The notes below the pieces were generated by a model that was not told where the DNA came from, did no database searches, and saw only the letters and a program-made list of their open reading frames with translations. A stretch of DNA of 62,615 bases, the filler included, from Choristocarpus tenellus KU-1152 (taxonomy: Eukaryota > Protista > Phaeophyceae), in the NCBI GenBank assembly GCA_964200185.2. It is 7 parts of 7 records of this genome, joined end to end, with 100 filler letters (N's around TTAATTAATTAA, not from the genome) between each part and the next. Parts side by side here need not be neighbours in the genome. Positions count along the whole stretch, not along the records: positions 56,335 to 62,615 come from CAXNAD020008490.1; 6 more parts are not named here. The stretch is one strand, 5' to 3'. How positions within the stretch are numbered: position 1 is the first letter of the stretch; each line of letters begins with the position of its first letter. The position numbers and the translations under genes are program-made. Shown piece after piece: positions 56,335 to 62,615 of the stretch.

Positions 56335-56387
56335 CCTGTCCAGTGGATACCAACATTATATCGCACTCTTGCACACACACACACACA

Positions 56388-56567
56388 GACTAAAAGTATC
56401 TCGGGGGGGGAGGGGGGTCTACACCGGGGTGTCTATTTCGGTCAAAATCAGGGAAGGTGCATTTACAATATCCATCAGACATATGCAACCATATCACCCA
56501 AAAATCGTGACATTAACAAATTGACCCCAAATGGACAGCCGCCATCCCCCCTCAGATACTTTGGACC
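56388..56567 (-). mobile_element. MITE family B copy (180 bp)
   Basis: GACTAAAAGTATCT...AGATACTTTGGACC; flanked by ACA/ACA within a CA microsatellite. Confidence 0.88.
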
Positions 56568-56754
56568 ACACACAATATAGACATCCATAAAATTAACAAA
56601 ATTATGTAACATTTTAAGCACTCGAAACTACTCAGCAAATCTGACTAAAAAAAATCTCGTCGCAAAAAAATGAAAGTTTTAAATATAAATCCATCGAGAG
56701 ACTGAAGCCACCCTCTTCACTTCTCTTACTATACTACATACACTACACCTCCAG

Positions 56755-57077
56755 CTGCAGTCCCCCCCGTACAAGACGACTACCCTCCTGCAGCCCTCTT
56801 TGACCACCCCCCCCACCTCCTCCGCCACCACATCATTCCTTGCCTTCGCAATCACCTTGTTCGACTGCCCCCACGCATCCATGCCAGATGGGCTGTTAGA
56901 AAAAGAGAAGAAATCCAGAAGCAGAGGGGTGAAGGGGGTCCAGAAGGGAAGGGGCGGGATTTGATGGATGGGGGGCTCACAATCTCACAATCAGAAGAAT
57001 ATACCACTGACACAATTTCAAACACCAAAGAGCACAAGCTTCTAGACAATACCTGTTGCCCCCCCCCCCAGTTCTAG
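56755..57077 (+). CDS. Possible terminal exon of an unknown protein
   Basis: Pyrimidine tract + CAG at 56752-56760, then a stop-free frame (VQDDYPPAALFDHPPHLLRHHIIPCLRNHLVRLPPRIHARWAVRKREEIQKQ...) to TAG at 57075; no recognisable domain. Confidence 0.3.
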
Positions 57078-57641
57078 TTGCTATGGCCAACAGCTCAGTT
57101 GGACATACATATGGTGTTATCTCATTCGTACCTGTACACCTCCTTGGGGGGTATAATGGCCTATTGAGGGGGTGGTGACTGATGTGATGTATGGTGTACG
57201 GGTGTGCAGTGCCTCCAACAACTAAAAACAAACAAAACAAACATATCATTTTTTTCTGTTTTTTTGCTTCTGATTTGTGTTCGAGTAGAGGTGTGGGCCG
57301 TACGATAGAGCCCCCCTCTGAGTATTAAAAAAAAAGAAATCCTGAACATTTATTTTTTATTCTTTCTGTTGCTGGTTCTGGTTTCCTGTGGAACTGTTTC
57401 ATGTACGTGTATACACCCACTGCTATTTGAGAAGGTTCTTCCGTCGAGATATTTTTTCTCTCTTTCATCTCTTCTTCCGCGTCTTCCATTGCTTAATTTC
57501 CGGTTGTGTTAGCTCTGGCCCTACCTCCGACAAGACTGGACAAATGAGTGATACTCAATGGATAAATTTAATCACCTCTATATAGTTGGAGCTAGGGATT
57601 GTACTGTAATCCTCCCGCGGTCAGAACCCCCCCCCCCCCCA

Positions 57642-57702
57642 ATCGGAAGAGCACACGCCTGAACACCACGCACCTCCGAATCCCGTCTCCCGNNNNNNNN
57701 NN
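57642..57702 (+). other. Illumina TruSeq adapter remnant plus 10-N gap (assembly artefact)
   Basis: ATCGGAAGAGCACACGCCTGAACACCACGCAC resembles GATCGGAAGAGCACACGTCTGAACTCCAGTCAC; translates NRKSTRLNTTH; flanked by poly-C. Confidence 0.9.
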
Positions 57703-58373
57703 CCCCCCCCCCTCCAACATGAAGCCCCAGCTAGAATATAAACAGATAGACTGCTCAGAAAAGATACTATGCCTGTGGAAATGTTAGAAGCAACAAGGGC
57801 TCTATGCTTTTGTGTGTGTGGTCAAGATGTGGTCGCCTTTCGTCAATTTACTCCCTCAAAATGTACACAACGGGAAGGAGAGGAGGATCATTGCGCTACC
57901 CAAGCACCGAACATATTCTCAGAGATGAGATTTTGGCTTGGAAGTCGACATATTTTGAAAAGTTGACACAGTTCTACAAGTACTTATTTTTCTTTGCAGG
58001 CAAGAATCGCCCCGGAAACACGAAAGCTTCTTGTACTGCTTCTGATATCGGCATAGTTCTCCGAATCATACACATAATACGTCAAAATTGGCTCATTGTA
58101 TACAGCTCTTTCGGGTTTTGGTAGGTTCTGGAACCTTAACAAGAGTGTTATTTCCCTTTGATATGGCCTTTTATCACAGTGCTAGGTCGTCGGATGTGCC
58201 AATCAGTGTGGTATTTTACTCAGGATATGCCTGCAAAATTTACACATTGGTTTCAAGGCATGGGGTATCAACTGCCGCCAATCAATAAACACAGGGGTCT
58301 GTCCCTAACCCAGCTTCTCCTCACCTCATCATCCTGCCCTCAGTCTGACCTCTTTGCTCTATCTTGAAACAAC

Positions 58374-58634
58374 GAGTGAAAGTATCATAGAGGGTACGAG
58401 TTTTGCCCTGTTTGTCCTTTTGGGGGTTAGGTTCCCACGGGTTTTTTATGACACTTTCCTACTCCGAAATGGTTCAGAGGGGGTAAAATGTATACATTAT
58501 GAAAACGTGTGTCTGGAACAAGGATATTGACACTTCCCAACAAACACCATAATAGCCAAAATTACATCAAAATCGCAACATTGAATTTGCGCCATCAAAT
58601 GGATGCGGCTCTACCCTCTGACATACTTTGACTC
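58374..58634 (-). mobile_element. MITE family A copy (best preserved, 261 bp)
   Basis: GAGTGAAAGTATCATAGAGGGTA...TACCCTCTGACATACTTTGACTC; AAC on both flanks. Confidence 0.9.
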
Positions 58635-60835
58635 AACCTGCTGTCCAAATCCTAGCTTTCACGCTGTTGCAAAGTCCCCAACAAGGGCCCTCTCCATGAT
58701 CACTGATAATAAACTGGACAACCCCCCAGCCCTGAGCAAGAAACGGTGTGAATAGTGTAAAGACAGAAGTAATCAAAAAGTAGGGGAAGGGGAAGGGGGA
58801 ATTAGGCAAGACTGCACTTATTCTGCACAAGTTTATTGGTATGAACTTCGTTGCAACTCTGCCTGCAAACAGATATACTTAGGTTAGCTTCATGCCAAAA
58901 CGCCTCCATCCTTCCCTCCCCTCCTCCCCACACTTGCAGGGCCCAAGAGAGTTGCCACTAGCTTACATATTACAACTGAATGATTGAAATAGTAATGATA
59001 TCAGAACACTTTGACGCCCAAAAACAAGCAAAAAAGGTCCGGCATGAGAATAATGTGGGTAGAGTGGGAGAGGCTGGTGGTTGAATGTTATGGATAACTG
59101 TACTCTCAAGTAAAATACATCATGGGTACAAGAAGGGCATGTAGATTGCAAATATTTACCAAAAATACTGTGTAGGAAAGGAAAAGGTCGGAGTTGGCAA
59201 AGGCAGGGAGACAATTCTGGGGGCATTTGGGACTGTCAACCACTGAGTGGAAAGGCAAGGTGAGGAAGCTGGCACTGGAGACTGAGTTCTTTTTGGTGGC
59301 AGCAATCTGAGGACAAATCCACACCCCTTATATTCTCAATACGAAGAAGAGGAAAACCAACTTCCTCCTAAATATTTGGAGAAAATGATGCATGGTCCAG
59401 AGAGGGATTGCATGCTGATAGCAACTTGGCTTCCACCTGGGGTATATTCTTGCCCAATCCAGTCGCATGATCTCCGCCTCAGGGCAGGGAGTTAGCCACA
59501 ACAAACCACGGATGATCAGGGAGGGCCCATCCAGTGCCCTAAAATGTAGTGGGGGCAGCAACTCTCGGTTTGAATTTTCCACCCTCTGTGGCCTGTCGCT
59601 GCGTTCCTGCCCACCAACAGCCCTCGAGTCACCTGGCATTCCCATCGCGTAACTAGATCATATCCATGTCATGGACACCTTTGCATGTGTTTACCTGAGC
59701 AGTGGTAACATTTTTTTTCGAGCGGTATATGCTCCGGACGACTTACTCTTGAGTGTTTTGGCTAGTGAAAGATACTCAAGGACGGCAAATGGGGGGGTGG
59801 TGGTGACAATGAGGTGTGCGTGATCGAGTATTTAATTGGAGATACAGGTTACGCGATGGTGTTTCTCGCACCTCCCCCCCACAAACTCTTGCCATCCCGA
59901 CTCTCCCAGCTGCTTCTCCCCCATTTCAGCTTGCATTTCTTGACTCTCACTTCGGTTAAGGCCAAGCCAGAAACCACGCAGGTCTCTTACTGTTGGGGCG
60001 GACCTCATTACAGAGGACGGTAGTTGCGACAGTCCAATTGGGCAAACAGCCCGTAGCTCTGTGCCAGGAGTTCCTCGGGAGATCCAAGAATGCAGGAGCG
60101 CAGATAGGATAGGGTATAAAATGTAAGAACAGTGATGTGAAAATTATAGAAAATCCTACCTAGAGACACCTTCACAACCTCCTCACCAATATCAAATGGG
60201 GAAAAGAATACGAATGACGCAACAGAACGCATTGATTGTCACATGTCACTGCTCAATGGGAAAACTTTGAATGGATGCACTTTTTTTCGTGCTCAAGTCT
60301 CAAGGCCTCCCAGGGCTTTGCTTTTCGCATAAGAAAACGACAAGGTCTTGATCAGACTCTGCTGGAGATAAGGCACTTATCTAAGGACGACTTGATATGG
60401 CAAATGCGGTAATACACAATGCAACAAGGAGAAACGTGTCGGGGAAGGGCAAATTATATACATAATACATTACGATAAGAAATGCTCGTTGGCAAACATT
60501 GCCCTTTTTTCGCTAGGAAAGAAAATCAACTCCTATTTACCCACCCCGTACCTGATCCCTGATGGGGTACACCCGTTGCACGATTGTTCTTCTCTCGTCG
60601 TCCTTGCTGACCACATCTGTCCCCATGATCAACTCAAAAAGAACCCGATCGTCGCCCTCTGCATCCCCAAGAATGTCACGATAGTATGCTTAGTCTATTG
60701 ATCTCGCAGAGGTTTATCCCTTTTGATGCTGACTACTAGCCCAGATATTCTGTCCTATGTAGTACACATCACACTCCACCCATTCCTCAGAAGCGGCCAT
60801 ATCTAGAGTAAGATCCTTGTTCTTCCCTTTGTGGT

Positions 60836-61553
60836 TGTTAAAATATAACCTACTCATTCGATTTGCTTTGATACGATACAGCATCGTCAGTCCATTGCAA
60901 TGGTCTCTATTCCCATTAACATTATTACCTCATTTGCTCATCATCACAACTCACTCAGAAGATCACAGTATACAGGATATATAGGAACAGTCGCTAACTA
61001 TCACTCATCCTTCAGGCATACTATGTGTGAAAGTATTTACGTTAGATATGGATTCCAGTTTGGCTTCTTCTTTCTTACTCGTGTTACTTCTTCTTTTTCA
61101 CACAAGTTATCAGTTACATACCATCTGTTGACTCTTGTTTTCTTACTTGACTGGGATTACCTGTTTACTCTACAACACGTATCAGACACACTCCAGGATG
61201 CAAAATAATTAGGGTTAAAGCCATCATCCTCATAAATCCTTCTCAAACAAGGTCACAACCCTCTTCACAGAGGATGAACTTCGTCATTTGAGCGTCTCAA
61301 TGAATGACCACACACTCTCTATCAATCGTAGTCTTCTGCTCTGAGCAAAACATGTCACAGACGTACCAGTACACATTTCACTTCAACCAAAGTCTGACAA
61401 AGTAAAACATCCCTTCAGTCACACCAGACCGAACCTACAGGTGTCTTGTTGCACGATAACTCGCACCTGTTTCTAAACGTGTTAATCACACAGCACAACC
61501 AAACCTACTTTCACATCGAACATTGTCGGATTGAGTAAAACATGCCATCAGAA
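60836..61553 (+). mobile_element. LTR family copy, 3'-truncated
   Basis: Starts TGTTAAAATATA..TACTCATTCGATTTGC and is colinear with 25785-26530 (CATTTGAGCGTCTCAATGAATGA, GACGTACCAGTACACATTT). Confidence 0.88.
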
Positions 61554-61790
61554 CTATAGTGGTAGCAGTAGCTTCGCTCTCTGGGGTTGTCCCGTCATAT
61601 TTTTTTATGTAGACATTGGATTTAAAAAATAATGCAGACATGATGTCCGTCCCAAGATCCTCCAGAGTACGAGCTTCATATTTTTTCGACATTTTTTTCT
61701 TTTTTTGAAGAAAGAGCAGTCATATTGGAATTCGAACCCTGGATTGTAGGTCACCAAGATGCACTATTACTTGATTAAAGTATAGGGTTT

Positions 61791-61970
61791 GGCTCAAAGT
61801 ATCTGGGGGATGGTGGCGGCTGTGCATTTGGGCACATTTTTTTTACGTCGTGATTTTTGTGTGATTTGGTTGCATACGTTGAATGGATAATGTAAGTGCA
61901 CTTTTCCTGCTTATGGTCCAAATGGACACCCTGGTATAGAACCCCCCCACACACATACATACTTAGGGTC
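61791..61970 (+). mobile_element. MITE family B copy (180 bp)
   Basis: GGCTCAAAGTATCTGGGGG...CATACTTAGGGTC; TTT on both flanks. Confidence 0.85.
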
Positions 61971-62049
61971 TTTAGGTGGGAAAAAAAGCCTCCCCGCCCT
62001 TTCTTTCTGTGTGTTCGTGCAATCGCTCTTTGACCTCAGCAAGGATATC

Positions 62050-62615
62050 TGTTGAAACCTGAATCACGTTTTGCGAAGGGGAATCGTGTGAGGCTCATAA
62101 CCTGTCGAATGCATCGTACATGTAAGCAAAATGCGTAGACTACTAGCGATGAGGAATCATAGTGTTGCAAAGCACCGACACGTAGTCTATGTTATGGATA
62201 GGTGTGATTGTGCTGCAAAGCACCAATGAATTTATTCTGTTGTAACTAAGTCAAGAATGATGGGATGTGAATTCAGTATTCTTGGTTGCTCAATCCAGAA
62301 GGATGTGAATTCAGTGTTCTTTCATGAGATACTCAGCGAAAGAAGTCCATGCTCTGTGAGAGGCTTGTTACCTTGGCTGGCAAGGGTTTTCCGCGGATGG
62401 TGTTAACTCTGATAACATTACATCCATGTGTGTGTTTGGTAGACAGTTTGCAGAGTGACTTTGGTACAATTTGAGGGATCAATGGCAGTCACGAAAGAAA
62501 ATAATAATCAACCGTCAACGTACAACTGTCAAAATTGAAACATGTGATGCAACTCAAGTGACGTACACTATACTATACTATTTGTGTGGAACGCAGAGCG
62601 ACTGTTCTGTACTAA
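62050..62615 (-). mobile_element. Diverged LTR family copy on the minus strand
   Basis: TGTTGAAACCTGA at 62050 equals the reverse complement of the solo-LTR end TCAGGTTTCAACA; further matches AACAGAATAAATTCAT..GTGCTTTG and AAGGT.ACAAGCCTCT. Confidence 0.75.
62063..62102 (+). pseudogene. 5' half of a tRNA-iMet(CAT)-like sequence inserted in an LTR
   Basis: ATCACGTTTT-GCGA-AGGGGAA-TCGT-G-TGAGG-CTCATAA-CC: paired D-stem (GCGA/TCGT), iMet-like D-loop, anticodon loop CTCATAA; stops 2-3 nt into the 3' anticodon stem with no T-arm. Confidence 0.75.

Follow-up and report, generated by a model that had tools for sequence, protein, structure and literature searches.

Near one end of a 62,615-nt stretch of DNA from Choristocarpus tenellus KU-1152 (hereafter the window), a run of 40 nt is established by sequence comparison as the 5′ half of an initiator-type tRNA-Met. 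The similarity ends at C62102 (tRNA nt 40) or T62103 (nt 41), and the bases right after nt 40 are TG (CA in antisense), which begin an LTR-like sequence that reaches past the end of the contig. The end at nt 40, the TG that follows it, and the textbook form of the resulting junction together point to a relic of a primer from LTR reverse transcription. We consider this the best reading of the locus and rate its chance of being right at somewhat above even. So understood, the stretch is a fossil left by an already known mechanism and does not represent a new system.

The analysis was carried out on the part of the window that comes from CAXNAD020008490.1 (positions 56335–62615, hereafter the piece), and the features discussed below are collected in Table 1. 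An earlier note on this DNA had quoted the letters from 62050 onward and had remarked that AACCTG is present twice, and both statements were found to be correct when the sequence was read again.

Table 1. Features at the tRNA-like segment and its surroundings (positions along the window)
Feature	Position	Strand	Basis or remark
TGTTGAAACCTGA	62050–62062	+	Sequence; LTR terminus according to the earlier note, alternatively flank or leader
tRNA-like stretch of 40 nt, ATCACGT TTT GCGA AGGGGAA TCGT G TGAGG CTCATAA CC	62063–62102	+	Sequence
Copy of initiator-type tRNA-Met 5′ half, nt 1–40, as assigned from sequence	62063–62102	+	Alignment, column count, initiator model
Putative acceptor strand ATCACGT, then TTT	from 62063	+	Sequence parse of the 40-nt stretch
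TTTT run, one nucleotide in excess	62069–62072	+	Alignment, column count
D-arm: stem GCGA (62073–62076)/TCGT (62084–62087), loop AGGGGAA	62073–62087	+	Sequence, alignment, end-cut model
Anticodon-stem 5′ strand TGAGG, loop CTCATAA, CC (nt 39–40)	62089–62102	+	Sequence
AACCTG spanning the tRNA/downstream junction	62099–62104	+	Sequence; also at 62056–62061
LTR-like stretch beginning TGTCGAATG, reaching past the contig end	62103–62615		Sub-repeats; LTR status candidate

In the parse of the 40-nt stretch, G26 stands between the D-stem strand TCGT and the anticodon-stem strand TGAGG, and the anticodon CAT occupies 62096–62098 inside the CTCATAA loop. For comparison, metagenomes were scanned with the pattern GGAA-N5-TGAGGCTCATAACCTC, which was taken from the 40-nt stretch itself. 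Matches were obtained at 87 loci, all printed match sequences read as tRNA, and ARAGORN called tRNA-Met in 11 of the 11 loci on which it was run. The majority of the 87 loci represent a single bacterial fMet family. Eight loci (L015, L045, L048, L056, L061, L067, L073, and L087) are of the eukaryote-initiator type, with A1:U72 and a GATCGAAAC T-loop. Each of these was called tRNA-Met by ARAGORN, and several lie in tRNA arrays on low-GC contigs.

When aligned with seven of the eukaryote-type initiator genes, the stretch matches from A1 through T41. A62063 lines up with the invariant A1 of these genes, and we regard 62063 as the probable exact 5′ end of the tRNA half; the U72 partner is absent along with the rest of the 3′ half. 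The anticodon arm, TGAGGCTCATAACC, is identical to that of the eight eukaryote-type initiator loci, and its 14 nt, which occur once in the piece (62089–62102), are identical to the tRNA-Met genes at the 87 pattern-selected loci. Position 29 of the initiator anticodon stem is G in the textbook form and is A in both the 40-nt stretch and the eukaryote-type initiator loci. The D-arm fits the initiator form GCGC-AGNGGAA-GCGY, with a 4-bp stem, a 7-nt loop, and one pair swapped. It is eukaryotic in form (7-nt loop AG-GGAA), unlike the bacterial or organellar form of the fMet genes.

Among the columns that are invariant in these initiator genes and free of the search pattern, 11 of 14 match, a count reached by just 3 of the piece's 12,440 windows. 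Two of the three mismatched columns belong to one base pair, C13:G22, which has become A13:T22 by a change on both sides with pairing kept. In the third, the invariant G9 of the reference initiators is replaced by T, and one extra T is present. A covariance model of the initiator genes scored the stretch at 21 bits (E = 1.2e-4 over the piece); since the pattern that picked out those genes came from the stretch itself, this result is in part circular. The initiator model applied to sequence cut off at 62103 gave 17.5 bits and placed 62073–62103 at model positions 10–42, again with partial circularity. Under a generic tRNA model, for which 30 non-Met tRNAs were used, the stretch scored 8.8 bits, which is weak support. 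In a plain alignment test, p was ~8e-4 with the GGAA columns and ~0.10 (not significant) with the GGAA columns masked.

The earlier note had described a tRNA 5′ half with an intact D-arm and a CAT loop. The independent columns and the initiator model bear out the half and both of these elements, and the stretch deviates from standard tRNA geometry by one extra T before the D-stem. The connector that leads from the acceptor strand to the D-stem comprises three T's, versus the standard two nucleotides (U8 and G9). The excess T may be a mark of read-through, an indel that arose afterward, or a fault of the assembly. Yeast initiator tRNA carries the m1G9 modification, and the change of G9 to T together with the extra T might record reverse transcription through such a modified base.

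A functional tRNA gene is ruled out: the 3′ half is absent, ARAGORN reported 0 tRNA genes on the piece, and Rfam, searched at E values of up to 10, found nothing whether it was given the piece, 191 nt, or 43 nt. The silence of both programs is expected because only half a molecule is present. The rest of a cloverleaf is missing from the flanks as well, where any resemblance to a T-arm, box B, or an acceptor 3′ strand does not exceed chance. As many as 34% (upstream) and 60% (downstream) of random windows of the piece resemble a tRNA 3′ half equally well. Since the flanks are no better than random, the segment is a 5′ half, and neither a decayed whole gene nor a permuted gene. A permuted or tandem tRNA, for which CCTCA and TTGAAACC upstream and TCGAATGCATC downstream were candidate parts, was rejected on the same two percentages. 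Under the initiator model, CACGTTT (62065–62071) pairs at six of seven positions with AAATGCG (62129–62135) over a span of exactly 72 nt. This pairing is probably due to chance, aided by the T and A runs; the estimated likelihood of its arising by chance is ~0.1, and there is no T-arm in between. Folding of the stretch revealed no unusual stability.

Representatives of the Hemivirus Copia elements begin cDNA synthesis at the 3′-OH of initiator tRNA-Met nt 40 (PMC1181622), and several Copia lineages use half-tRNA-Met priming, also outside animals and yeast (PMC6317226; PMC10886601). The proposal that the tRNA part stops at the half-tRNA priming point therefore agrees with what was found, with an observed end at nt 40/41 versus the published nt 40, and T62103 could still count as tRNA nt 41. 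The reverse complement of 62089–62102 is GGTTATGAGCCTCA, which in form is a half-tRNA primer binding site. In antisense, the junction reads ...CATTCGACA/GGTTATGAGCCTCA, where an LTR-type CA is followed directly by primer-site-type sequence. On its sequence, this is the form of a classical U5/primer-site junction. The orientation is also as had been claimed, that of a primer with its minus-strand DNA, the 3′ end of the half being joined to the TG-initial sequence. tRNA halves of the usual stress-induced type terminate within the anticodon loop and not at nt 40. What is observed is a tRNA half, the point at which it ends, and the CA/GGTTAT junction, and reverse transcription is probably their origin.

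According to the primer-relic reading, the 40 nt would represent the 5′ half (nt 1–40) of the host cytoplasmic initiator tRNA-Met copied into DNA, and the source fragment would be the primer used by Hemivirus-type Copia retrotransposons. The 3′ end of the half would still be attached to TG-initial retroelement sequence, in the manner of a primer attached to minus-strand strong-stop DNA. In a faulty round of reverse transcription, the plus strand would have copied the entire primer, not merely its last ~14 nt, and this whole-primer copy would have been retained in the integrated DNA. Retroviral circle junctions are known to retain short remnants of the primer site at LTR ends (PMC3292463), and 35 Copia families have been described in Ectocarpus (PMC12477816). 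A more specific claim is that the locus preserves, as a molecular fossil, the half-tRNA primer of a Hemivirus-like Copia element of brown algae over its full length, and so records for a stramenopile where the primer ends in vivo (nt 40). This we put forward tentatively, as a possibility with perhaps one chance in three of being correct.

Two placements of the tRNA copy relative to the LTR may be considered. In that of the earlier note, which relied on comparison with a solo LTR outside the piece, the copy may lie 13 bp inside an LTR. Counting against this placement, there is no simple reverse-transcription path that leads to it. Mispriming had been suggested, but when worked by hand for the AACC/GGTT microhomology this route predicts a duplication of TGA, and none is present. 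Equally simple is a second placement, in which the LTR may end at 62103, with the 40 nt as a read-through extension of U5 and 62050–62062 as flank. Indeed, because the U5-CA/primer-site junction is canonical, the LTR may simply end there. The former placement implies family copies that start with TGTTGAAACC and do not carry the 40 nt, and the latter implies family copies that start with TGTCGAATG.

The stretch from 62103 to 62615 is a candidate LTR, and we call it LTR-like. It contains local direct sub-repeats at 62152–62176/62200–62224 (25 nt, 80%) and at 62263–62283/62301–62321 (21 nt, 95%). Such sub-repeats occur in U3 enhancer regions and alone are no evidence of an LTR. Within the piece, neither a second copy of 62050–62615 nor a second LTR or Copia coding sequence near the stretch was found. 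The ORFs of the piece contain no retroelement domain, and a Pfam search on 10 of them was empty. Sequence to the left of 62050 is unrelated and includes a 184-nt repeat. Exact 22- to 24-mers of the stretch had no match in viral contigs, metagenomes, or prokaryote genomes, all of them collections without the host contig. Comparison of translated ORFs from the LTR-like stretch with the protein collection yielded no related ORF, a degenerate Copia reverse-transcriptase motif had no match on viral contigs, and the 14-mer was not found in the literature searched.

Several of these results count against a primer relic, namely that 62050–62615 is not repeated in the piece and that Copia coding sequence is lacking nearby. 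The same is true of the one extra T, the score from the generic tRNA model, and the p value of the masked alignment. Moreover, there is a single locus, and its contig is a draft of poor quality in which an N gap and the remnant of an adapter are present.

Several rival origins were considered. A non-LTR (LINE/RTE-type) reverse transcriptase could have made either a chimeric retrocopy or the filler of a break repair. A transcript (62103 onward, in sense orientation) would have been copied before the enzyme jumped to an abundant tRNA fragment and read it through to the tRNA 5′ end, so that 62050–62062 would be target flank. Brown algae are rich in RTE-type LINEs (PMC12477816), and a start at tRNA nt 1, as seen in the stretch, is what a run-off copy should have. 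We nonetheless consider this origin unlikely. The end at nt 40, in the anticodon stem, and the initiator tRNA-Met identity suit the Hemivirus primer and are less suited to generic tRNA halves cut in the loop, the junction resembles one between U5-CA and a primer site, and a LINE sequence, tail, or target duplication is not seen in the piece. An explanation that makes an accident of reverse transcription unnecessary is that a TG...CA element, either solo or full length, inserted between nt 40 and nt 41 of an initiator tRNA-Met gene or pseudogene. The 40 nt would then be the 5′ half of the gene, 62050–62062 its upstream flank, and the 3′ half would lie past the end of the contig. The TG indeed begins exactly where the tRNA similarity stops. 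However, the element would have had to enter one of a few genes of 72 nt at a point 1–2 nt from the known primer end, and the 3-nt connector would leave such a gene non-functional. The explanation fails altogether if the solo LTR cited in the earlier note begins with the same 13-mer, TGTTGAAACCTGA. We regard an insertion of this kind as improbable, to a slightly greater degree than a LINE-type chimera.

Less credible still is a reading in which the repeat is a Helenus-like LTR and the tRNA-like stretch one of its regular components, serving as a tRNA-derived RNA polymerase III promoter. TRIMs with tRNA-like sequence inside their LTRs occur in fungi, animals, and plants (PMC10886601), and the stretch includes the A-box-like TTGCGAAGGGG. 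Helenus LTRs, however, have both box A and box B, whereas here neither a T-arm nor box B is present beyond chance, and the similarity is cut precisely at nt 40. In addition, the tRNA-like parts of Helenus elements have no complementarity to their own primer site (PMC10886601). Lowest of all we place a chance resemblance or an assembly artifact. The empty ARAGORN and Rfam results and the poor assembly of the contig are in keeping with it, as are statistics made partly circular by the choice of reference genes with a pattern from the stretch. It is opposed by the rarity in the piece of windows that match as many independent invariant columns, by the D-stem pair that differs from the reference genes on both sides with pairing kept, and by a natural anticodon arm that is identical over 14 nt. 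An overlap of 6 nt is also insufficient for an assembler to create 40 nt.

The primer-relic reading can be set beside several known systems. Chimeric LINE-1 insertions resemble this locus in that a reverse-transcribed tRNA half is joined to retroelement-derived sequence (PMC13174262). They arise by a non-LTR mechanism, however, and their tRNA is mostly opposite to the LINE, whereas here the partner is LTR-like and the cut point is that of a Hemivirus primer. Helenus TRIMs share the presence of tRNA-related sequence in or at an LTR, which here is a candidate (PMC10886601). In Helenus, the tRNA-like unit is complete, has boxes A and B, and recurs in every LTR of the family, in contrast to a 5′ half only, cut at nt 40. 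At retroviral 2-LTR circle junctions, primer-templated nucleotides are similarly kept at the U5 end through imperfect processing (PMC3292463). Those junctions retain few nucleotides (6 in FIV clones) and are unintegrated, whereas the C. tenellus copy is 40 nt long and resides in chromosomal DNA. The Hemivirus Copia elements copia, Ty5, Osser, and 1731 offer the likeness of an initiator Met tRNA, an end at nt 40, and an antisense junction of the CA/GGTTATGAG type. In these elements, ~14 nt of complementarity lie beside the 5′ LTR, whereas the present locus has the full 40-nt half, no internal element, and a brown alga as its host.

If the primer-relic reading is true, a genomic copy of the primer gives both its full extent and its cut point in brown algae, from DNA. 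To our knowledge, half-tRNA priming has been worked out biochemically for copia and Ty5 alone, and elsewhere it has been deduced from ~14 nt of complementarity. A true relic would further mean that plus-strand synthesis is able to continue to the far end of a half-tRNA primer, with a product that can become fixed in a genome. Should a LINE-type chimera or an element inserted into a tRNA gene lie behind the locus instead, it is a curiosity of an ordinary kind.

The remainder of the contig also has some unusual features. At 57626–57715 there are long stretches of C, a gap of 10 N, and a degraded string (AATCGGAAGAGCACACGCCTGAAC...) that resembles an Illumina adapter. The region looks like a scaffold join made from poor reads, and the assembly quality of the contig looks low. 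Exons of a conserved ORF (P0002, CAM9645816.1) fall within the segment 58722–60695, which has 82–84% DNA identity to another C. tenellus contig, CAXNAD020007841.1. The exon at 60552–60686 (minus strand) is 84% identical to the C. tenellus protein. Similarity to CAXNAD020007841.1 breaks off abruptly at 60695, and the N-terminal part of the ORF is absent, such that 58722–60695 looks like a truncated paralogue or pseudogene. Our guess is that the conserved ORF is TraB-like; Pfam found nothing.

This gene fragment is flanked by an inverted pair of 184-nt repeats (56394–56577 and 61781–61964), which are 76% identical and 5.2 kb apart. The right copy stops ~85 nt to the left of 62050. The pair could reflect a small repeat that is present twice, or it could form the terminal inverted repeats of a DNA transposon in which part of a gene has been captured.

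Three of the eukaryote-type initiator loci recovered from metagenomes lie in arrays of 7–11 tRNA genes on contigs with 26–47% GC (L045, 2292–3549; L073, 5640–7403; L087, 2621–10630). The initiator anticodon arm in all three is GTGAGGCTCATAACCTCA, with A29. These contigs may derive from giant-virus or organelle-like genomes.
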